A DNA stretch of 64,000 nucleotides from Entomortierella parvispora E1425. Lineage: Eukaryota > Fungi > Mortierellomycota. Under the pieces are notes generated by a model. It saw only the letters and a program-made list of their open reading frames with translations, was not told where the DNA came from and did not search any database. Below, in pieces: positions 37,506-57,600 of the stretch. How positions within the stretch are numbered: position 1 is the first letter of the stretch; each line of letters opens with the position of its first letter. Where the stretch lies: contig BQFW01000004.1 of NCBI GenBank assembly GCA_020891255.1, forward strand, positions 372,001-436,000. Direction: 5' to 3'. The position numbers and the translations under genes are program-made.

Positions 37506-39075
37506 CTACTGGTCGCTTGGCTTGACATCATAGCGTCGTCCACGGATACCCCAGATACCCCAATTGCACTGAGCAGACTGTCGGACATCGGTCATGTTGA
37601 TCTCATGCTTCAAACTCCTGAAAGCGTTCTCTCTGGGCTTCATCAACCAATCCAGTTCGAAACCCGAGTTTTCAATCTCGTTCACGTCGTTCATGACATC
37701 CTTCTCATCGAATCCTGTTCCAAAGATGGCGCACTTTGTGTCCAACAACAAGGGCAAAGTAGGCTTCCACATCTCCTTGGTGGCTGGGTGAGAGAGACCA
37801 GGGGAGAACAAGAAGAAGACGTCGTAGTAGGGGTTGAAAGGTCCAGCCTCGGCATGGTAAGACTCGTACCGGGACGAGTCGTAGACAAAGGTCATTTGTT
37901 CATAATGAACATGTTGATGAGGCTCCTTGGATTTGGTGTGAGGGGGGATAGCATCCGGTCCAACGAAATGAATCTGGAACGCCGTCGACGGGAACAGGTA
38001 GGCCAGCTGCATGTAGATATGAGGGGGCAAATGAGACTCTGCACGGGCGCCTAAACAAAAGATACGGACGGTGTGTGTGGCGGTGCTGCGAAGATCCTGA
38101 TTTTGAGTGATTCCTGGGAGCATGGCGGGGTGCAAAGTGTGGCGAAGGGCTAATCAAGGAAGAGAAATACTGCGAAGGTTAGCCTGATGAATATTCGCAA
38201 GAGCAATAGAACAAAAAAAAAATCATTCAAAATAGACGTGCCAGCTAATGACTTCAATCCTTCAACTGTGAGGTCCTTTCCCAACTGGTAAGGCGAAGAC
38301 TGATGAAGCACCGATCCGATAGTGAGGGGATAAGTCAAAACATGGGAGACATGACGCATGGACCGCTCCGAGTTCATGCTGAGGAATCCACGAGTGTACA
38401 AAAATGTATCCCAATTTGACAAGTTGACAGCCTCATCGCGATGTTGAGCACCTAGAAGTAGGATTTTAAGGTAAAATAAAAAGTTAGAACAGGATAACCG
38501 GGATAAAAAAAATTGACCATGCACCCCCCCACCCCATGGGTTTCGGAAGGATATGGCATGGATCCCGATCGGGAATAGTTGAGCACCATCCTACCTGGGA
38601 ACTCGAACTCCTTCATCCGACGGCCGGATCGGAGGTCGTGCTCGTCTTCGTTGACTTCCCGGAGGATTCCACAGACATGTTTATGGTGCTCCTTGTCAGC
38701 CTTGTAATGCTCCTCGCTGCAGTGGGTAGGGTATCCACAGTCGGGGCATTCAAACACGGGTCGTTTGCTGTTCTTGTGTTCCGGGTGGTCGTGTTCCTTG
38801 CAGACGGGGCAGGAGCCATGGGCGTTAATCCATTCTGCCTTGGTGCGGACGGGGGCCAAGGGTGATTTGCTGAGGGGATGGAAGAGGTCGGCCTGTTCCA
38901 GGACGGGCTCGAATCGGGAGGTGAATGCGGCGTCCTTGGATTCGGGCTTGCGGGAGGTGAAGAAGGATTTGAGAGAGAGGGATCGGCGAGCGGCAGAAGC
39001 GGAGGAGATGGCGGCGGATGCGCTCCTTGGGAGTATCCTGAGGGCCGGGGCCAGGGGTCGGAGCCTTGAAGCCAT
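37506..39075 (-). CDS. MSS51: Mitochondrial COX1 translational regulator/assembly factor MSS51; 3 exons
   Basis: Arg/Ser-rich presequence, FHPLSKSP, CPDCGYPTHCSEEH, LREVNEDEHDLRSGR, NWDTFLYTRGF, LGARAESHLP, FLFSPGLSHP and NWGIWGIRGRRY. Confidence 0.93.
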
Positions 39076-40465
39076 TTAGGATGTGCCGAGGGTTAGGAAG
39101 GGAGGGAGGGAGGATGGATGAACGGGATGCAGCAGGAACGAACTCGCTATTGTTGCGCAGATCTGCATGTGTTTCCCTGTGCGCTGATCTCTTCGGTGTG
39201 TGTCTGCTTTCTCGGCGTGCTTGGGTTCCTGCCTGTGCTCGACAGACGCGAGGGTCACGTGCAGATCGCTGCACGTGGAGGAATCGTCACCGAAGATGCA
39301 TTTGTAGCGCATGCAACTCTCGCGTCGACTCGAATTTCAGAAGCTCGTCAACGACAGAGGCTCCAGAAGACGATCAGTGAGTTTCAACCTCATCGCCGAG
39401 ATATGTACTGGACCCAGCACGGCCTCTGACTGAAAACGGCTGTGGCCGCTTTTCAATCTCGAACTCTAGCGCAGGACATGGGATTTCACCAAAGATTTCA
39501 TCGTGGAGTACTTTGCCCCACGACGTTGAAAACTTGAACTTATGGATGACGACTTGGAGGGAGACAGTAAGGGCAAACTTCATAAAAATGGTATTTTATA
39601 TAAAGGCTTCGCATGGACAACACTCCAGCGCAGGCAATCAAAAAAATCTCGCGTATTGAACCAATGTATTTTTTTTTATGATGCTTTGCTAGGTGACAGG
39701 AGGAGTCCACGGGGTGTCTTTCAGATATGAAGGTGCGAAGCAGCACCAGACAGGGCAAAGTCAATAGCTTGCCTCCTTGCCATAGTCCCATCCCTTGTAG
39801 CAACACTCCCGACCCTCGAGTTATTGAAGGTAAGAAGCTGGAAAGTCTGAGTAGCGCTTAAGCTGTACAAGATATCGACCTATTTTTTTCAGTCTTCACG
39901 GTAGATACACCTGAGAAACACCGGAAATCCAGCCACCCATGTGCAGAAGAGATCATGGGGATACCAAGACATCCATTGTCACCGGGACCTTGTCGAGAAA
40001 GATATCGAGTTGAAATCCCTGCACGTCAATGTTATTTGCAACAAATCTAGATGCAAATCATACTGTGTTAATCCTCCCTTTTAGCGAGCATGTCTGGGAA
40101 CTGGAGAAGGACACGCAACTCTTTCTCAGTCCTAGTGGAAACGACTGGTCTCTACTAGCACTGAAAAATGATGAGAAAATCTCTTTTCTTTTTCACGTTC
40201 GTCTTCATTGGCATTCAATCCTTTATTCATTGTGTAAAAGGGTTGTTAATTTCGGAAACAACTCGGCGCAGCAAACAACGAGATTCTGAATAAAATATGT
40301 ATGAAATTGAAGGCAATTGGAACGCCGTCCTTATATCCTGATCCATGTGCCCCCTTGCCAACCCACCAAGCCGACATTGTCTGCTACGTAGCCACGACTA
40401 TCTTAATTGTGGCATCTGTTTTAACGATGCACGCTGTTCATATATGAATGATACGAAGAGGTCTT

Positions 40466-43631: not shown

Positions 43632-46600
43632 ATGAGTTCGCGCTTTGCCAACTCGGCCGCTCCGTCCCAGCAACAACAGCAACACCAGTATGTGCCACCG
43701 AATCAGTACCAGGAGGGCCATCATGTCGTGGCCGACAGTGCTGATTGGAACAACAACCCCTACGCCGATCAGTCCATGGTAATGCATCTGTCTGTCCCAT
43801 GGAGATGAGTGAGATTCGATTGCGGTGTGTTTGCCGCCACTTTCCCTCCAAACGCGTCTCTCCGTTCAAGGAAAAATTTGTATTAACTGCCCTTTTCTCT
43901 CCTGGTTCCTCTACGGTCCCTGCAGAAAAACTCGGTGGGCTCCATGAGTTCCTACAAGGGCTGGGCCTCGACTGACCCAACAGCCTATCCGCAGCAACAG
44001 CAACCGCAACATCAGCAGACAACCAAAGTCCCTCCTCCTCGTGGATCCTCCTATGGAAGAAACCGAAGTAACAGCAACAACAGCAATGCAAGTGCTGGCC
44101 TGGGCTATGGCCACAACTACAACCACAACTACAACCATCCTGGAGGCAGTCATCTTAGTCAGGTCAGCAACAGCAGCAGCATTCCGTACGGACACCACCA
44201 CCATCAGCAGCAACAACAGCAGCCGTCTTTGTATCCCCATTACCAAGATGTTACAGGGTACCAGCCATCAACCCAGTTTACGCGCACAGACTCGAACGGC
44301 ACTGCCAGATCAGATGGGACCAGTACGACCTTCAGTAGACCAGGAGAGGGTTCCCAGAACCTTCACAACTATACTCAATCTAGTCAGGGACAGCAAGGAC
44401 AACATGGACAGCAAGGACAACAAGGTCCGGATGGACTGATTCCAGGATACCCTACTGTCGATACCGAAAGTCGATATGTCGGCTACCCTAGACCCCCTCA
44501 GCCCATAGCCCCAGCTCAACAGCAGCCGCAACAGCCAAGACAGCACCGTGCAACTCCATCAGACACCTCGTATATTTCAGTTGGTCGTACAAACCATGAT
44601 CCGACACAGTCAATAGAGCAAGGTCCCCATTCCCAAGGATCGCCGCGGATGAATCAACGAGCCCTTCCAAAAAGAAGAGATCCTGGAAATGGTCTTGCTG
44701 CTCCCAGTGCCGATGGAGAGTTGCCTTCTCTGGATCAGTACGAGGCCATGCTCCAGCAAATGACCTCTCCCAACCTCGGACCCACCAGTCCCAAGGATTC
44801 ACGATTCGGTCAGAGGCGCTCAGAGTATGAACGCTCTGATCGCTCCCAGAGACAGTCCCGGAAACAGCAAGAACCACCTCTGCAGCCCCCCTCTTTGCAT
44901 CAAGAACTGAATCAATACCCTACCAACAATGGAATTGGTGGCAATATCGGCGTGTCTCCTGAGGACAGAAAACATCGGAGACGGAGCAGTATGCCCAGCT
45001 CTTTGGGTGATATGCCCACTCGCATCGTGACTGAACTAAAGCGCCGGAGCAGCGGTTACCATTCACCTATCGACGGATTACAACTTTCTGTGCCCATTAA
45101 TGAGAGCGGTTTGTACGGAAACCAGGATGGTCAATGGCACAATGGTTCAGTCCAGGATCCCAACCTTGGCTCAACTTCTCATGTCCGTCAACAGCAACCG
45201 CATCAGCAACAACAGCAACAACAGCAACAATACCAATCGCAGAGTACAATCTCTATGCAGGAGGATGATACCCGCTCCATTATTTCGGATGGCTCTAACC
45301 GACACAAGCTAGAGTTGGAGCAACAACGTCGGAACAAGCGAAACTCTCCTCGACTTTCGCAACTCGGTTCCAAGCCACCGTTGACCTCAAAGTCGCAGCT
45401 ACGACTGAGCCATACTCTAAGCCAGTCTGATGCAGATGATGTAGCGACTTTCTCCAACACCAAGGACACTCACCAAGAGAGCCCCTCTTCAAGGCCTGTC
45501 GCGGATGACAGCGATCGTCAGATGGAGCAGATTGAGCTCGAACTGCAGCAACTCCAACAGGGCATCTCCACGCCTCGAAACCACAATAGCGGCTCCAAGA
45601 GCGCGACTCCGTCGTCTGCTCGCTCAAGAGCAACAACGCCTCTAGGGATGGTCGCTGAAGAAGAAGTGCCAATGCCCAAGGGGGCCCCAAGCCTCCAACA
45701 ACTCTTTGCGTCTATGGATGACGGTAGCGGTCTCCAAAATACTCCTAACCGCTCTACCACTCCACCCACAAGATCCAGACCCACTACGCCTGTCACAGGA
45801 GTTCTTCCGCCACCAGGACCTCCCCCAATGACATCAGCACCCTTACCCCCTCCTCCAAATGGATCACCAGCTGCACGCAAGGGACCCTCCTCCAACGGCC
45901 GACGTGGCACTAAAGCAAACGTGTCTATGTCGACTCCGATCCAACCCCCTTCAGCACCACGACCAAGAGCAGGCTCGGTTGCATCTGGGGCTATCTCAAT
46001 TGATGGTGCCCTGGCTCAAGCTCCCCCTTCGCTCCCCCTGCCGTCGCTTCCACCTCCTTCACAGCCATTACCCTCACTTGCACTTCCTGGAGATGCAGCT
46101 TCTCAGCGCCGAAGGAAAGCTTCAGGTGGCCGTGATCTCATCCAACCTTCGCAACAGCTTCTTTACGAAACTCAAAACATGTATAGCCAGGACTCCTTAC
46201 CTACACCGCCTTCATCCTTGCCAATCAATGTGGAGCTTGATCCAGCGTCGTCTCCGACCCCCCCTTCCCCGTACTCTTCGATATTCTCCCTTCCTTCCTC
46301 CACGGCCTCATCACCATCTGCTACCTCGGCACAAATTGCTCGAATCAGAAAGAGGATCAATACACTGGAAAAAGAATTAGAAGTCTTTGACAGAGAACAA
46401 CCCATGCAGGGCCGTGATGGATCAGATATACAGTTCCAAGTAGATCGTCTCAGACAGGAGAAGGAAGGACTGGAACAGAAGCTGGCTCTTTTGTTGACGG
46501 AGGCAGGGTCCACCTCTCTGGCTGCCAATACCACTTCCATCTCAACCTCCAGACCATCATCGGGTGGACGCGCGCCTATGCAAACGACCTTGATTGCGCT

Positions 46601-47822
46601 GGATCAGGACCTGTTGCAACCGCCTGGCGTATTGCCTCCAGCTGAGGGACGATCTGTATCCGAATTGAGCATGGAGTTGGAAACGCTGCGAATGCAACTG
46701 ATCGAGAAGGAGGAGACGATCACGCGGATGTCGGTGGGGCAGCGCGAACACGACCAGAACGCTCGCCCAGTATCGGAGGTGCGTTCGAAGTCGAAAAAGA
46801 ATACAACAAACACCTTAAATGATATCCAACGGCTGCAGGGTCTCTTGGTCGAACAGGGGCTAAACTCGAACCGAAGCAGCAGCAGCAATGCAGAGGAAGG
46901 ACAGGAAAACTCATCGTTGGCTCTGCACGCGCTCCAGCAAGAATTGGAAACGCTCCGGCAAGAGACAGCTTCTCAGGAAGAAGTCAAGGCAACAATGGCT
47001 CGAGAACTCGAAGCTTTCACGGCCCGATCGCAACAAGAGGAGGCACAATACCGCACATTGCAAGATACTGTGCAGCGACTGACATCCAAGGTCAGTCGTA
47101 TGGAGGCTCAGCACGCGTCAGAAGTGAAGCAAATCCAAAGAGATCACGAGGAGCTGTTGGAGAAGGTTGTTATGGAGCATGCAAACACGCTCACTGACCT
47201 ATCGGAACAATCCAAGACGGACTCTGAGGCACAACTCCGCCGCTGGCGCGAGGACCAGGAAAAGGGCAGTGATCAAGATAAGCAAGAGTCTCTGGCCCGA
47301 GAGAAGGTGCTCCTAAGAAGACTGGAGGCTCAAGCGCTCAAGAATGATCAATTGGAAGAGCGGATCTTGGAACTCGAGAGATTTCAAAACGACCATGAGG
47401 AGGAGAGTGAGAATTGGTTGAAGACCAACAAGTCGCTGGAACGACAGTTGGCTATTGAACAATTGCAGCAACAAGAGAATCTGTATCGGATAGAGCAAGT
47501 GGAGAAGGAGAACCGACGCTTGCGAACAATCTTGGCAGATTTGGACTTGGCCGCTCAATTGGCCAAGATCACAGCGGAGGGCCATGAGACGGAGGATGAA
47601 GATGCGCTCTACGAGAGTACCACTTCCCGTGCTCGTTCAAAGGGGGCGCAAGACTTGTACAAGGACCAGAGACAAAAGTGGCTGGACCGGACGCAGGCTT
47701 TGGAGCGCAAGATGGCCAGGTCAGAGGAAGAAGCCACGGTGATCATGCAAAGGAATATGGAACTCATGGTCGCCTTGGAAATGACCCAGTCTGCCTCTTC
47801 GTCGGTCGCGACGCCAATGTAA
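43632..47822 (+). CDS. Large hypothetical protein (~1340 aa): Gln/Pro/Ser-rich disordered N-terminal two-thirds and a C-terminal coiled coil; exons 43632-43778, 43926-47822
   Basis: 3.9-kb open exon. An upstream exon joins in phase 0 (ATG|GTAATG ... CAG|AAA). Heptad-like Glu/Gln/Leu-rich C-terminus. No family recognised. Confidence 0.85.
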
Positions 47823-48550: not shown

Positions 48551-49772
48551 ATGAACACGCAAGATCAGGAGCCAATTCGTCCTTTGTGCACGATCATCAA
48601 TGGCGAGAACGCCTATGCCTTCGCGCTCGCCTTCCGCAAGAACAATATCCCAGACCTCCCTCCCTCTACTCGAAGCATCTACCGCGGCCTCGATCTGGTC
48701 CTCTTCCGATCCAAGGTCGTCGATACCTCTTCTTCTTCTTCTTCTCCGACCAGTAACAACCCCTCCTTTCCAGGGACGTCCTGGTACATCACCCGTACCC
48801 TTTCCGCTTCTGAGGATGATCTCGTGAACATGCTCTTGTTGCCGCCTTGGAGAGATGCGGATGGAAACATCTTGTCGCCGTATTATCCTGACCTGAAGAC
48901 AGATTTTGATCAATACCGTCAGTTGTTGACGGGTCGACTGAGCTTTACATGCGCGGTGGATCCAGAGAGGGGCACGGTCGCATTGCATGGCACCGCGCCA
49001 GCGCCTTGGTTCTCGACGTTTGGGAACAAGGAGGTGGTGTTTGAGCTGGGGATCTGGCACACCCATTTTGAGGCTGCGTTGGTGGCGGCCAGGGAGGATT
49101 CGGATATGGACCGGGCCATGTACCCGCTCGAGCCCGCTCCCAAGGACATGTCGAGATCGCCCCTGAGTCTGGATGATACGCCTTATTCAAACAGATCGGT
49201 GATCTTCCCGATCCCGACGACCTCCCCTCCGGCTTGGGCAGAGGGGGCGGGGGCGGGATCTTGGGCCAGAACGGTGTTTGACTCGACGAAGGGTCAGCTC
49301 TCTTTTGAGATTTTGAATCGTGTGCAGTTTCCAAACTCGTTGTCTTCGGCTCAGACTCTGGTAAAAGTTGTCTCCCTGTGGTCTTTGCTTTTTGAATCTC
49401 ACTTGGGTCGTTCTCCTTCTAATCTCTTGGAATTTATCCTGTCCTCTTCTTCTTCTTCTTCTTCTTGTTCTTCCTCCTCGCCTTACAGAACGAGACTCAG
49501 TTCGGCAAGGACCTTTTGTTTGCACAATCGAATGGGACCCTTTACACGTTTGGCACGCGCTCCAATGACCATGTCTTGACAAAACTGAATTTGGGCTATG
49601 AGGGTGCAGATCCAACTAGCATCACTGCGACTGTGGACAAGTCGTTTGCCACGACTGCGTTTACCAATGTTGGTAACGGTTGTGACTTTACAGCCGCGAA
49701 CAAGGACGTTGCTATCACCGCACTCAACAACAATGTTTATATCATGTGCAAAGATAATGTAAGAAGAAAAAT

Positions 49773-49804
<32 letters not shown>

Positions 49805-50488
49805 TTGGTATACATGCAAGAAGAGGAACTTGTCATTTTGACCTCTTTTTTTTTTTTTTTTTTTTTTGGGTGATCCCTCAAATAGAACAACGTCGCTCAG
49901 ATTCTGATCCACAATGGGACCGTGTTCGATCCGTTGTTCACGGTCCAACTCACGGCCCAGATGCATTGGCCCTACACTCTGTTGGTGACCTCCGATACCC
50001 CAGACACGCTGGACATTCCCAAAACGGCGACTCCCCCAGTGAGCCCCTCTGCCTCGCCCAGCCCTGTCAACATTCTCCATATCCAAGCGGACTATGGATA
50101 CCAGGCCAGCATCAACCTTGATACCCGATCTCTGATTTGGTTCGACACTAGGGGGTTGACCTCTCCCGAGTACTCTCAGTATCCCTACAATGACAACTAC
50201 TCGGCGAGTGCGTTGCTAGCTGGAAGCAGTGATACGTTATCGTCGTCGTCGCCTTTGTCGGCTGGAGGAATCGCTGGCGTCGTGGTGGGTTCGTTGGCGG
50301 TCGTGGCCTTGGGTGTGGTGGCGGTGGTGGCGGGTGTTCGTCGTAGGAGAAGACAGCAGCAGGGGCAGCAAGGAAACGATGTTGAGCTCGAGTCCACACC
50401 GGTTGATCAGACACCCGCGGCTACTACAGTGACCGCTCCGGCTGAGATCGCATCCGCGCGTCCTGGCGAAGCTGAATCGAGAGCTTGA
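48551..50488 (+). CDS. Single-pass membrane protein with a beta-rich ectodomain; exons ~48551-49360, 49489-49758, 49888-50488; N-terminus uncertain
   Basis: Introns join three frames in phase. A Ser-rich juxtamembrane region precedes the TM segment IAGVVVGSLAVVALGVVAVVAGV and the stop-transfer RRRRR. Confidence 0.75.
49778..49804. repeat. (GA)n microsatellite inside an intron
   Basis: Read directly from the sequence. Confidence 0.85.
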
Positions 50489-51131
50489 TGGTGGTTTGGA
50501 TCCAGAGGTGCCTGAATCACGAAAAGAAAGTGGATTCTAAAAACCTGTCCTTTTTGCTTCATACTCGCTCGAAGAAGGCATCGGGATCGGAGAATATCTG
50601 CAAATGGATGCAAGAGTATCCCCCAAGCTCGTCCGAGAGCATAGGACTACACAACAAACTCTGCACTGAGTCATTCTGATACCATGAGACATTCTCAGGC
50701 GACTCAGTACTCTATGGTCCTCTGATGTCTTCACTAGCGTCTGCTTTCGTTGCCTTTCTACGAAGAGGACTAGAAACGGTGATATGCAAGCGTCGGCGAC
50801 GTGCTCGCGCCGCTCCAAGAAGAAGACACCCCAAATGATGATGGCCACAACTGGCTTTTCGAAATCCTTGAACGTCCGCAGTAAGAGGAACTCTTACTTC
50901 CAAAGACAAGATGAAAGAAAAACGCAGGTGGAGGGATTCCCAGTAAAGTATGGCTGTCGCGACGTGTTGACCTAATTGTATTATGGGCCATCCAACCACT
51001 TCCCGTAGGACACGCCAAAAGGAGCATTCGCTACATAGACAGACAGTTAGCAAGGTCGATCACTGCCAACAAGCAAAATAGAGGCAGGCAGCTCTCTCCC
51101 ACAGGCACTCTTCTCACAATGAGTGGCAAAT

Positions 51132-51139
51132 AAAAAAAA
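51132..51139 (-). terminator. Pol III T8 terminator; first run of 4 or more T downstream of tRNA-Gly
   Basis: Plus-strand A8 at 51132-51139. There is no AAAA on the plus strand between 51141 and 51250. Confidence 0.75.
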
Positions 51140-51234
51140 GAACTCAGATCCCCGTTTTTCAAGTCCGAAGACAAGATGTGCACCGTACAGGATGGTGCTT
51201 AAAGTAGAAACGGTGGTCATTCCAATCATTGTTC
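51140..51234 (-). ncRNA. Candidate box C/D (k-turn) RNA co-transcribed downstream of tRNA-Gly
   Basis: Terminal stem GAAC/GUUC, box C-like AAUGAUU, box D CUGA, internal GCACC/GGUGC and GUC-UUCG-GAC hairpins, ending at a T8 run. Confidence 0.7.
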
Positions 51235-51250
51235 AAGATTCGCACAGCTA

Positions 51251-51321
51251 TGCGTGGTCCGGGAATCGAACCCGGGTCTACCGCGTGGCAGGCGGTAATT
51301 ATACCACTAAACCAACCACGC
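51251..51321 (-). tRNA. tRNA-Gly (anticodon GCC), intronless, 71 nt
   Basis: Acceptor stem GCGUGGU/ACCACGC, anticodon arm ACCGC-CUGCCAC-GCGGU, A box TGGTTTAGTGG and B box GGTTCGATTCC. Confidence 0.97.
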
Positions 51322-51702
51322 TTGAAGGTGCTGATATGAGATTCAGTTCCAGCTCCTCCAAGTTCTGGATCCCCGACTCAGATTTGCCACCAATTTCGAG
51401 CCCAGAAAGTCACGTGCTCGGATGATCACGTGCCGACTTATGTGTGTTTTTTTGGGAGCGGTTTTGAGAAGCTGTGGATGCAGACTACACTTTCTCAGGT
51501 CTCATGCCCTCGGGGGTCCTTTGCCGAAAAAAAAAGACAACACTTTCTGAGGAGGACACTGTGGCTGCATGGATCGTGATGTGATGTCAAGGATATATTA
51601 TGATATTATGATATCTTTTTATTGTGTTTTTGGGGGGAGGAGAGTTTTATACAGATTTCTAAGAGAAAAGAGCGAGAGTGACGAGAGAACAGAAAAAAGA
51701 GT

Positions 51703-53383
51703 TTACTCGCGCTCCCAGAGGGCAGCCATACCCATACCGGTACCGATGCACATGGTGGTGACACCGAGCTTGGCGTTCTGGCGCTTCAACTCGGGCAACA
51801 AGGTGGCGATCTGACGAGCACCTGTGCATCCCAAGGGGTGACCCATGGCGATGGCACCTCCGACGGGGTTGACCTTGTTGATGTCCAAGCCGCACTTCTC
51901 GATGGTGTAGACGGCCTGGGAGGCGAAGGCCTCGTTCAACTCAAAGACGTCAACGTCCTTGATCTGGATACCGGCCTTCTCGCAGACGGCGGGGATGGCG
52001 TAGGCAGGGCCGACACCCATGATCTTGGGAGCGCAACCGACGACGGCCGAGGTGATGAACTTTCCGACGATGGGGAGACCCAACTTCTCGGCGGTCTTGC
52101 GCTTCATGAGCAAGACGGCGGCGGCACCATCGGAGACCTGGGAGGCGTTACCGGCGGTGGTGGCACCGTCAAAGGCAGGGCGCAACTTTGAGAGGGACTC
52201 GACGGTGGTACCGGCACGGATACCGTCATCCTTGGAAACAATGATCTCCTTCTCGTTGTCCTCAGCATCCTTGATCATGGTCTTGACAGCGACAATCTCG
52301 CTGTCAAACTTGCCCTCGGCCTGAGCCTTGGCGGCCTTCTGGAAGGAAAGAGCGGCGAAAGCATCCTGCTTGGCACGGGTGACGTTGAACTCGCTGGCGA
52401 CGTTCTCGGAGGTGATACTTTACAAAAAAAAAAAAAGAAAAGTCGAAAAAAGAATGTTAGAAAATGCCATGTCACTCTAAAGCATCCAGTGGTGTCACTC
52501 TTTTTTGTCTTTACTCCAATGAGAGCAGATCAGATCAAAGAAGCGAATAGTCAACGCGAATTGAACTTACCCCATGGGGAGCTGGCAGTCAGCAGCAGCC
52601 TCGCAGGCCTCGGGGATCTTCTCGGAGGTCTGGGCAGCCATGGCGGAGGCGCCGTATCCCATGGTCATGGACTCGACACCGGCACCGATACCAATGTCGA
52701 TCAAACCGGTCTGGATGTGGGTGGCAATGTTGACGACGGCCTGGAGACCGGAAGAGCACTGACGGTTGGTGGTGTAGATCGAGGTCTTATCGGGGTATCC
52801 GGCGTAGAGAGCAGCCATGCGGGAGACGGTGGCACCACCGGCAGCCTGGAGAACGTTTCCGACGCAGATGTCGTCAACGATGGAGGGGTCGATCTTGGTG
52901 CGGTCCTTGATGGCAGCGAGAACAGCGGCCAAAAGATCCTCACTACGAGTTGAAGGGCATTGACAAAAGCAAGCAGAGGTATTAGTGGGGGATGAGCTTC
53001 GGACCAGATCAAAGAGGAAGAAAAACGGGTTCGGGGTCTTTTGGGTGAATCGATCGGTCAGTCCTGGTTGGAACGTCCGCACAGCGCCAGCTTTTGATCC
53101 AATTGAGCTCGCTCCGTGTCCTGGTACAGGCCGATCGTCTTTGTCGTGCTCCTGAAAGTGTGTTGTCCTTGTGCAAGTGAACACGGTGGTAAGGACAAAC
53201 AACTTACGGGACAGTGTCCTTGAAGCCACCCTTCTTGCCACGGGTCATGGGGGTGCGGACGGCATCGACAATGACAACATCATCAGCAGACTTGACACCA
53301 ATCTTTGTGGGGATGTTGGAGGTCTGAGCAGCGGTGGGCTGGACAGTCAAGTGGGAAGAGATTTGTGCAAGACGGGAAGACAT
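51703..53383 (-). CDS. POT1: Peroxisomal 3-ketoacyl-CoA thiolase; 3 exons
   Basis: PTS2 signal RLAQISSHL, NRQCSSGL (catalytic Cys), NEAFA, GGAIAMGHPLG and TMCIGTGMG. Confidence 0.96.
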
Positions 53384-54644: not shown

Positions 54645-57600
54645 TCATGAGCTGCCAAACTCCTTCTTTATCGTCTTGAACAGATCCCCCAGATGACGAT
54701 GACCGGATGATGCTGTCGAGTTCATCGAATCTGTCCTCAATGTTCCTTTTCTTCCTCCTCCTTCTCCGCCGTTACCATTACCACCACTACCGCCATTGGT
54801 GGGACCTTCCAAAGTCGGACCTTTAGTGTCGTAAGGTTGCTCCACGAGATCATGAGGGTGAACGTGTTCCTGATCCGAATGCCGCCTTTCATTGGCCTTC
54901 TCCTGCAACGCCTTCTCGACCAGAGCTCGATCCTTGTCATCAATCTCATGGACCGCTGTCCGTATGACTCCGTTATCCTCTTCACGTTCCACCTCATGGA
55001 ATTTAGAGACGGATGGGACTCTTCCTCTTGCTGGGTGATCATGGCCTTGACTTTGGAAAGGTTGCAATAGCCGGGAAGAGGGGAGGGAAGGTGATTGACC
55101 TGTATTTTGTTGTAGTTGTTGGTTTTGGTGGTAGACGGCTGGAGGTGGTTGTAATGTGGAGGAGGTTCCTGACTGGGCCGAGGCACCAGACCCAGAGTGA
55201 TTGGAGGTGATGTCGGAAGGTCGAATGTTCAGTCCTTGACTGGCAGGATGACTTTCACGTAGGGACTCGATCAAGCCCGGGTCCTTGTAATCCCGATAGC
55301 TCGAATGGGGTTGATTCGAGTTGATGGAAGAAGAGTAGCTGGAGGGTCGACTGCCTCCATCGATACTAATTCCGTCTCCTGCACCCAGTCCGGCAAAGGC
55401 GCTGCCGCTACGTTCCGATGGATCTGTGCTGGTGACGCGGGTCAAGGGAAGAATGCCACTGTTTCCAATGCCCATTCCGACTCCTGCTGCTGCAACAACG
55501 CCTGTGCCAGCTGGACCTCCGACACTCACGCCACTGTTGGAGTAATTGGGACTGCGGCTACCAATGCCTTTGCCCCATGCGGCCTCCTTCATCTCCTGAA
55601 CAACGTCTTCCAGGGTTCGTGTGTTGTTTGTGTTTGTGCGACTCAACGGCAATCCATCGGCACCCACTCCAGTGCTGGTGCCTGAGCCACTCCCAGGGCC
55701 AAAAAGTCCTACAGGGTTGAATCCTGGACCCAAAGATCGACCGTTCAGCGATCGTTGATCATATCCAATGGACCTCTGACTCTGGCCATCGTATCCAATT
55801 GTCCTCTGCAGCTGCGAGTCGTCCTCCATGAGTCCACCAATACTCGAGCCACTGATTGTAGGCGGCCGTAAGACAATCTCGTCGCCAATGTTGATATGAG
55901 GCAAGCGGGTCACGACATGGGAACTCTCTTCTCGTTTCCGGGACCAGGTTCTTGTGTACTTGTATTGCAGATGCAGCAGTGGGACCGTGACACCATGGAT
56001 CAAGACACTGGAGAGGACCAGGAACATAACAATGGGCCAGATGATGGAGCGTACCCTCAAGAGTCGGTCCACATTGTGCGGATTATCACCTAGATTGTTA
56101 GGGTTCGTCATTCCGGCCGTGACCTTGGAAAAAAAGACGGCGCCGACGCCGATGGGACCGAACCAGCCAGCAAAGGCAGCCTCACGGCGGGTAGCAAGAG
56201 CAGGGATAAAAGGTTTCAGGGCAATGACAAAGGGCATTCGACGAAACAGAAGTACCAAGATTGCCAGGACAATCATACGCCAGATCGAGAGGCCGAGCGC
56301 TGGGTCATGGAAGCTAGAAAAGGGAATCGAAGCTCCAATGTACACAAAACAGGCCAAATTGAGAAGCATATCAATGATTTCCTGGATATGGGCTTCTGCA
56401 ATCTCGTTCGAGAACCAGTCGCTATCAATAAAATGAAATACAAAGGAAAAGATGAGGATGTGCATTTCTTTTCAGTTGCGTTCACTTCTTTTTTTTTGCA
56501 ATAGACACCCTTGTGTGTTTGTATTTGTCACTCACTCCCAGGCAAAGACATTTCCTGCAATGAAGCAGGCCAAGAGATCATCCGAGGCTAGGATACTCAC
56601 ACAGCCCGAAACCGCCAGGGCCAGCGCGATCGAAAACACCAAGAAGGACTCCTTGTCGATCAGGTTCCTAAAAAAGGAAAAGCGAGGGTCATGCGCTGTG
56701 GATCAGTCCTCCAGTCTTTTTCTTTTCTCCTCTTGGCTGCAGAGGGTTGTGGTTTCTTGGATCCCCTTCTTTCTGCAAGATCTTGGATTTTTTTGTTTAC
56801 CTGTTTTTGGCTCCTTTGACCAGTTTGCGGGCTGCAGCGCCAATCAGCCCTCCAAGAACAATACTCAACAAGATCTGGTAAGCCCAGACCAAATAGAACC
56901 ATTGCGCAAAGGCCTGACCCAAGGAGCGCTCCCGCATGATGTACAATCCCAAGAACAAGAACGGTAATCCCATGCCATCGTTGATGCCGGATTCTGCAGA
57001 TAGAAGGTATCGGATCCTGGGCGGGACGTGCTTTTCTGCAAACCTGCCCTTAACCACCGAGTTGGACAAGACGGGATCTGTCGGGGTAACGCAGGCAGCC
57101 AGGACCATGGATTCCACAAAGTCGAGGTCTGGGATCAACCCCCAGATCAAGAGGGCGGAAGTGAGCCACATCAAGATCATGAGCGGGACAATCATCATGA
57201 AAAGCGAACGTCTCTCCTTGACCATGTACGATCTAAAAGAAAGGGTGGTTGGGGGGTAGAAGAGATAAGAGGGGGAAAGGAGGTGAGAGAAGGAAGCAGG
57301 GAGCGGGGAAGGAGGGGAAGGGTCAGTTCCAGGGTGTCGAATCCTCCTTTGTTTTTTTTAGTGCCGAACAGCAAACATAAAAGATGGAAGTACCGAGGCA
57401 AGGACACTCCTGCAGCCATGACTTGAACTGCAATAACGATTCTTGTGAACTCCAATGTGACACCATCAAAGTTTTTCCATGACATGGGATCAAATATTCC
57501 TATGGCGTATGGTCCAATGATGATCCCAAAGGCCGTTGCAACAACTAGTGCACAAGTGGTTGCAGATATGGTATTTTAAAAGAAGGGGGAAGAGTAGATG

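Follow-up and report, generated by a model that had tools for sequence, protein, structure and literature searches.

A probable tRNA-Gly(GCC)-led Pol III dicistron with a structurally conserved RNA of C/D-like, kink-turn-compatible ends in Mortierellaceae

The closest described systems are dicistronic genes in which a tRNA leads a second small RNA. tRNA-snoRNA dicistronic genes are described from plants only (PMC2780460, PMC2566860), and tDNA-Gly(GCC)-snoR43 of Arabidopsis and tRNA-Met-snoRNA of rice are such units (Kruszka et al. 2003; PMC2566860, PMC2780460). In Yarrowia lipolytica, tRNA-Trp(CCA)-RUF70 and tRNA-5S rRNA dicistrons are found, and 28 of the 30 tRNA-Gly(GCC) genes lead a second gene (PMC2566860). 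RUF70 is an RNA of about 70 nt that lies behind all 13 tRNA-Trp genes and was recognised by its distant T-run and by compensatory changes (PMC2566860). Among snoRNA-like RNAs of other function, SNORD13/snR45 and snR4 use an antisense pair that flanks C1773/C1842 or C1280 of 18S rRNA (PMC9670809). An earlier note on the DNA analysed here knew of no tRNA-C/D RNA dicistron from early-diverging fungi, which agrees with the plant-only record, and a search of the literature on Mortierella snoRNAs found nothing relevant.

The window, by which we mean the whole 64-kb stretch of Entomortierella parvispora DNA that was analysed, carries such an arrangement on its minus strand. A canonical tRNA-Gly(GCC) gene with internal A and B boxes lies at 51251..51321 and was called by ARAGORN and by Rfam (RF00005, 65.9 bits). 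From its discriminator base, a spacer of 16 nt (51235..51250, minus), free of any T4 run, leads to the terminal stem of a structured RNA of 95 nt, the second cistron (51140..51234, minus), and directly 3' of this RNA stands a T8 run, the putative Pol III terminator (51132..51139, minus). Read on the minus strand, the 95-nt RNA starts with GAAC-AAUGAUUGG and finishes with GAUCUGA-GUUC. The earlier note had proposed exactly this order of tRNA, spacer, C/D-like RNA and T8, and all four are present; it had also pointed to the lack of a T-run directly after the tRNA, and the first run of T4 or longer in the window is indeed the T8, 111 nt past the tRNA. At gathering thresholds, the Rfam scan of the locus returned the tRNA only, and so did a scan of 351 nt with permissive filters and E-values up to 10, so that the description of the second RNA as an orphan stands in that no snoRNA family was matched at E up to 10. 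Neither Rfam nor ARAGORN gave a match for a 5S rRNA or a second tRNA 3' of the tRNA-Gly, which sets the locus apart from the tRNA-5S units of Yarrowia. An ORF of 100 codons lies on the strand opposite the unit. It was rejected as a gene, because its frames are broken in the homologues and its matches in a protein search are ORFs antisense to tRNA-Gly genes; a protein-coding explanation of the whole locus was discarded on the same broken frames and because the antisense ORF has no relatives outside the tRNA part.

Like the plant units, this locus combines a leading tRNA-Gly(GCC), a short spacer, a downstream RNA of putative C/D type and a single T-run after the second gene, and release by tRNase Z would be expected here by analogy. 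It differs from the plant tRNA-snoRNA genes in its fungal host, a member of the Mortierellomycota, in its single copy as against 12 copies, in its degenerate box C and lack of a detectable relation to Rfam C/D families, and in the interior of the RNA, which is a conserved three-way junction without a conserved guide. With RUF70 it shares the make-up of a fungal tRNA-led dicistron, an orphan structured RNA, a distant T-run and compensatory changes, whereas its length of 91-95 nt, its C/D-like ends (RUF70 has none), its position behind one of many tRNA-Gly genes and its occurrence across genera are unlike RUF70.

On its own, the window sequence does not reach significance. For the 95-nt RNA a fold z-score of -0.26 was obtained, which is unremarkable, and the bare end motif, defined as a 4-bp stem, NNUGA ... 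UGA and the closing stem at a distance of 60-110 nt, was seen 10 times per 128 kb against about 5.9 times expected from shuffled sequence. When a run of T6 or longer was added to the motif, a single instance was seen per 128 kb, namely 51140..51234, against 0.05 expected. The significance of the unit comes instead from homologous units in two other lineages, from covarying helices and from sequence conservation that ends at the terminator.

The first homologous unit was reached through the neighbouring thiolase gene in Mortierella polycephala (L001) and consists of tRNA-Gly(GCC), 1 nt, a 95-nt RNA, 7 nt and T7. The second lies on a soil-metagenome contig (L003), the one locus found by a DNA pattern scan of JGI metagenomes, and consists of tRNA-Gly(GCC), a 7-nt spacer, a 91-nt RNA, 2 nt and T9; the same kind of pattern scan of prokaryotic genomes gave no unit. 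All 71 positions of the tRNA are the same in the window and both loci, and the first run of T4 or longer follows it after 103 nt in M. polycephala and after about 100 nt in the metagenome contig. Spacers vary in sequence as well as in length (16, 7 and 1 nt in the window, the metagenome contig and M. polycephala, respectively). The earlier note had made its proposal depend on conservation of the boxes and stems downstream of related tRNA-Gly genes, and we found both the stems and the kink-turn core retained 3' of tRNA-Gly(GCC) in these two other Mortierellaceae lineages, with compensatory changes. Outside the unit, the flanks of the metagenome locus have nothing in common with the window. In M. 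polycephala the unit is inverted relative to the thiolase gene, and among 11 thiolase loci from other Mortierellaceae it is found only once, in M. polycephala itself, with no tRNA beside the thiolase gene in the remaining 10. Considering these unrelated flanks, the inversion and the 10 thiolase loci free of tRNA, the unit is, as read from its positions, mobile about the genome as a block.

The limits of the unit were further defined by aligning to 49500-53000 the DNA contigs of three further isolates that carry the same species label. Contigs X26 and X29 align from inside the tRNA to 51132, with 1 mismatch and 1 gap and with 10 mismatches and 8 gaps, respectively, and X33 aligns from inside the tRNA to 51128 with 13 mismatches and 3 gaps. 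Past the T-run, the DNA of the related strains is unlike that of the window; in X26, 699 other letters replace 606 nt. On the upstream side, similarity of X28, X29 and X33 covers the 5' flank or leader of the tRNA gene (51322..51396, minus), reaches 51395/51396 and is lost from there as far as the thiolase gene, about 189 nt being replaced by 122-163 unlike letters. The conserved island thus extends from about 75 nt upstream of the tRNA, through the tRNA itself, the spacer and the RNA, to the T-run, and it ends at the terminator. Read depths of the contigs bearing the RNA were 117.7, 322.9 and 80.3 against about 120, 295 and 80 for flanking genes, which corresponds to a single copy, and the 95-nt stretch occurs once in the 64-kb window. 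A tRNA-derived SINE or other dispersed repeat was ruled out on these two counts. The tRNA-Gly(GCC) itself has a depth of about 10-50 times single copy in the related strains, where T4 follows at once in two other copies seen on loose ends, and the RNA is attached to only one of the many tRNA-Gly(GCC) copies.

When folded alone, the RNAs of the window, M. polycephala and the metagenome contig each adopt the same Y shape, in which helix P1 closes a three-way junction with hairpins P2 and P3. In the window, P1 (51147..51218, minus) pairs RNA positions 17-27 with 78-88, P2 (51180..51198, minus) is GCACC/GGUGC with a 9-nt loop, AUCCUGUAC, and P3 (51163..51172, minus) is GUC-UUCG-GAC. All three interior helices named in the earlier note, the hairpins GCACC/GGUGC and C(UUCG)G and the helix CCGUUU/AAACGG, are part of the minimum-energy fold. 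P1 reads CCGUUU/AAACGG in the window and CCAUGU/ACGUGG or GCCUUU/AAAGGC in the others, and its 10 pairs show 5 double, 2 single and no broken changes relative to the window. In M. polycephala, P2 is replaced by CGUCC/GGACG with 3 double changes, 100% of its cells paired and the loop core CCU kept, and the place of P3 is taken by CACC-UUUCUA-GGUG with 2 double changes. Over the 41 comparisons with the window in a hand alignment, 29 pairs were unchanged, 2 had single and 10 had double changes, and none was broken. The independent minimum-energy folds of the window and M. polycephala RNAs have 28 of 29 pairs in common within 2 nt, while 1000 dinucleotide shuffles of the M. polycephala RNA gave a mean of 2.4 shared pairs and a maximum of 16.

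In a model-fitted alignment, 85% of cells were paired against 72% in shuffled controls (reached in 0/500), and double changes fell at 6 pairs, where 2.5 were expected (3/500) and controls with a slid partner gave 0-1; with three lineages only, and with both alignments fitted to the structure, these covariation statistics are weak. RNAalifold on an automatic alignment recovered P2 alone, as P1 and P3 are shifted out of register by indels there. The covariance model derived from all three RNAs scored them at 110.9, 100.1 and 81.2 bits and found nothing else significant in 130 kb. As modelled from folds and alignments together, a conserved three-way junction of P1, P2 and P3 is shown for the RNA interior, and the pattern of covariation in these sequences is what a functional RNA fold predicts.

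Another explanation would be that the tRNA has a long 3' trailer without a stable product, acting as a cis element that tunes 3' processing or termination of the tRNA or as a source of trailer fragments. The RNA runs that were searched for the unit contained only words of the tRNA and nothing of the 95-nt RNA, as a trailer would have it, and tRNA genes with distant terminators occur in other eukaryotes (PMC3141230). Against this, a discarded trailer would hardly account for compensatory changes in three helices, for lengths held at 95, 91 and 95 nt, for end motifs kept across genera, or for the restriction of the RNA to one tRNA-Gly(GCC) copy among many, and we regard it as very unlikely. A functional, co-transcribed structured RNA behind the tRNA is, on the other hand, likely.

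The two ends of the RNA are its best conserved letters, while most helix sequences have changed. In the window, the 5' half of the kink-turn-like end (51223..51234, minus) comprises the stem strand GAAC, the bulge AAU, GA and UUG, with AUGAUUG as the box-C-like sequence, and the 3' half (51140..51147, minus) comprises box D, CUGA, and the stem strand GUUC. Box C has the consensus RUGAUGA and box D reads CUGA; kink-turns bound by Snu13/15.5K/L7Ae occur in box C/D RNAs, in the U4 5' stem-loop and in the U3 B/C motif. The terminal stem has 4 bp in the window and in the metagenome contig (CUGA-GUUC) and 3 bp in M. polycephala (GAC, with UUGA-GUC). In the hand alignment, the A/U-A-U bulge and the tandem G.A/A.G pairs are invariant among the three lineages, so that a canonical stem, a 3-nt bulge and tandem G.A/A.G are present at the sequence level in all three RNAs and the geometry first proposed for the window alone extends to the other two. 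The deviation of box C at its end, already remarked upon in the earlier note, likewise recurs: box C reads AUGAUUG in the window and AUGACUU or AUGAAGA in the others, with RUGA invariant and the last three letters (UUG, CUU or AGA) differing by lineage. A G.U pair joins position 6 of box C to position 1 of box D in M. polycephala, and this pair is absent in the window and the metagenome contig.

The motif resembles known kink-turns in its canonical stem, its 3-nt bulge ending in U, its tandem G.A/A.G pairs, sheared in the known cases, and the pyrimidine pair that comes next. It is unlike them in that it is compatible at the sequence level only and in that the G.A pairs lead into a weak stem: the positions next to these pairs are U.U, C.U or A-U, followed by U/C, U/C or G.U, and one or two weak pairs with a 6-nt bulge are all that lies between the G.A pairs and P1. 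The ends are accordingly described as C/D-like and compatible with a kink-turn, which is short of proof. The weak and variable non-canonical stem is also what would be found if the RNA were a structured Pol III transcript of another class, comparable to RUF70, whose ends are a closing stem and bind no kink-turn protein. The dominance of the three-way junction in the molecule and the frequency of the bare end motif by chance fit such an RNA, and RUF70 is a precedent for tRNA-led orphan RNAs in fungi (PMC2566860). A simple closing stem, however, leaves it without explanation that conservation is strongest in the stem, in the AU-ending bulge of 3 nt and in the tandem GA/GA despite the changed helices, and we consider an RNA of another class unlikely. 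The kink-turn-compatible reading of the ends is the one we retain.

If the RNA were a canonical box C/D snoRNA, it would guide 2'-O-methylation of rRNA or snRNA through an antisense element beside box D or D'. Its terminal stem, its AUGA ... CUGA ends and its length of 91-95 nt are those of a guide, and in the Arabidopsis unit the partner of tRNA-Gly(GCC) is a C/D snoRNA, snoR43 (PMC2566860). The segment before box D is at the same time the 3' strand of P1, and it varies together with its partner (ACGGGG, ACGUGG and GGCGG). Confined in this way to P1, the segment does not behave like a guide for rRNA methylation that has been conserved: over the 10-15 nt that precede box D it is paired to the 5' strand of P1 and follows the changes of that strand, so no invariant target holds it. 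The longest word common to the window and M. polycephala RNAs is 6 nt. Internal C' and D' boxes are absent, as is any internal CUGA, and a second AUGA is found in the window and metagenome RNAs and not in that of M. polycephala.

Antisense targets were sought in a complete S. cerevisiae-type rDNA repeat, and a lineage-specific target may still exist among the rRNA, snRNAs and tRNAs of the fungus itself. Viral contigs contained no eukaryotic rDNA; the repeat came from a contig contaminating a prokaryotic assembly and was validated by the length of its 18S, 1800 nt exactly, and by primer sites that would be expected. No antisense match of at least 9 bp ending beside box D was found in S. cerevisiae 18S, 5.8S, 25S or spacers, and matches in this rDNA numbered about 20 per RNA, at chance level and with none common to the three RNAs. 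As a separate observation, at least 120 assemblies labelled 'bacterial' or 'archaeal' in GTDB (L014-L093 among the loci) contain eukaryotic rDNA with an exact 18S 3' end; several of these contigs were checked and have about 9 kb with an ITS1 of S. cerevisiae type, which looks like contamination.

The absence of any Rfam C/D family at E up to 10 points in the same direction, and a canonical guide is, in our estimation, improbable. The suspicion voiced in the earlier note that this is not a standard methylation guide is supported by the covariation of the segment before box D with the internal helix and by the failure to find a conserved rRNA antisense element. As far as the sequence comparison goes, the 95-nt RNA is not a canonical methylation guide. 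Around C1773 and C1280 of 18S rRNA, bipartite antisense was limited to matches of 6-8 bp with G.U pairs at positions that are inconsistent across the homologues, and an acetylation guide of the SNORD13/snR45/snR4 type was ruled out, as there was no consistent bipartite 18S match in the three RNAs. The RNA is similar to SNORD13, snR45 and snR4, whose C/D ends close conserved internal stems that are relevant to function, in having C/D-like ends around conserved stems, and in that none of these is a methylation guide (PMC9670809); it differs from them in the lack of consistent bipartite antisense and, from SNORD13, also in that SNORD13 is a Pol II gene.

Elsewhere in the window, at 40163-40292 on the plus strand, a canonical box C, AAUGAUGAG, is found near 40168, and UUCUGA follows near 40285. 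Rfam C/D matches there are below threshold, and the covariance model gave 19.8 bits at 40163-40253 with an E-value of 0.08, which is not significant. The stretch is possibly an ordinary C/D snoRNA whose host is non-coding, or else a chance resemblance.

Upstream of the tRNA, paired CACGTG(A) E-boxes lie at 51411-51416 and 51427-51432, 90-111 nt from the gene. They are two of 7 CACGTG in the 64-kb window. In M. polycephala (1510-1535) and in the metagenome contig (25-60), the only two CACGTG of each locus are placed 64-104 nt upstream of the tRNA. With spacings of 16 nt in the window, 20 nt in M. polycephala and 30 nt in the metagenome contig, a paired E-box element appears to be common to the genera. 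The pair could be read as the promoter of a Pol II unit, in which the tRNA would be merely a 5' processing signal, and its presence 64-111 nt upstream in 3 of 3 loci is in favour of this. Such a unit would not be expected to carry T7-T9 after the RNA, directly in the window, 2 nt further in the metagenome contig and 7 nt further in M. polycephala, nor should the conservation among related strains stop at the T-run. A Pol II origin hence seems barely credible to us, and transcription by Pol III is retained as the reading of the unit. The paired boxes are read here as the upstream element that Pol III genes of this lineage usually have, and so as a mark of a normal tRNA gene of the active type; the idea that they serve as a promoter special to the second RNA was rejected.

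A second CACGTG pair with the same 16-nt spacing is located at 39256-39277 with no tRNA nearby, between a zinc-finger-like ORF (38452-39075, minus) and non-coding sequence, and Rfam and folding of the 120 nt next to it gave nothing. The neighbour of the unit is a gene for a peroxisomal 3-ketoacyl-CoA thiolase (51703-53350, minus), whose last exon (51706-52278, minus) is 100% identical to Entomortierella parvispora GJJ70375.1. The thiolase gene stands beside a Na+/H+ exchanger gene (54645-56465, minus), and this gene pair is syntenic across Mortierellaceae (L007, L008, L010 and L011), whereas the DNA past the thiolase stop codon differs in nearly every Mortierellaceae genus. The window also contains an uninterrupted ORF of 1295 codons (43935-47822, plus), which is enriched in Gln, Ser and Pro and whose C-terminal third resembles a coiled coil.

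Taken together, the locus is probably a tRNA-led Pol III dicistron with a new, structurally conserved, C/D-like kink-turn RNA. We put at roughly 60% the reading that it is a two-gene Pol III unit whose second RNA is a non-guide snoRNA-like particle with a C/D-type kink-turn. By extension from the plant and Yarrowia dicistrons (PMC2566860, PMC2780460), from which transcription by Pol III, cleavage, trimming and protection by protein are all derived here, an ordinary tRNA-Gly(GCC) gene would recruit Pol III through its A and B boxes. Because this tRNA has no terminator of its own, the polymerase would read through, passing the end of the tRNA, the spacer and the RNA of 91-95 nt, and would halt at the T7-T9 run. 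RNase P and tRNase Z would free the tRNA, and exonucleases would trim the downstream RNA back to its terminal stem. This stem, together with the 5' AUGA and the 3' (C/U)UGA, could then form a kink-turn of box C/D type, on which Snu13 would probably sit, perhaps with other C/D core proteins, and which would in this way protect the RNA. For a particle of the Snu13/C-D type as such, we put the odds a little short of even. The role of the RNA is more likely that of a non-guide snoRNA-like particle, a chaperone or a scaffold, and any pairing in trans would be confined to the P2 loop with its core CCU or to the junction strands, since the compact fold leaves only those free.

By these comparisons, the RNA represents a new family; the arrangement is of a known kind, and the lineage is new to it. 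In the literature that was searched, tRNA-led snoRNAs are described in plants only and tRNA-led orphan RNAs in Yarrowia only, and the known range of tRNA-led small-RNA production would be extended to an early-diverging fungal lineage. The unit could also provide a compact natural tRNA-RNA expression cassette for these oil-producing, plant-associated fungi. As a small RNA with C/D-like ends and no guide, its product bears on how snoRNA-like particles gain functions other than methylation. A wider proposal, which we hold tentatively and rate as rather less probable, is that of a new Mortierellomycota-wide family of non-guide kink-turn RNAs made by Pol III behind tRNA-Gly(GCC), with their function residing in the Y-shaped interior. 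If this were true, the RNA would form a Snu13-type particle, for example a chaperone of ribosome assembly or a protein scaffold, and tRNA-Gly(GCC), which is also the leader in Arabidopsis and Yarrowia, would be a promoter and processing cassette that was used repeatedly or is ancient.
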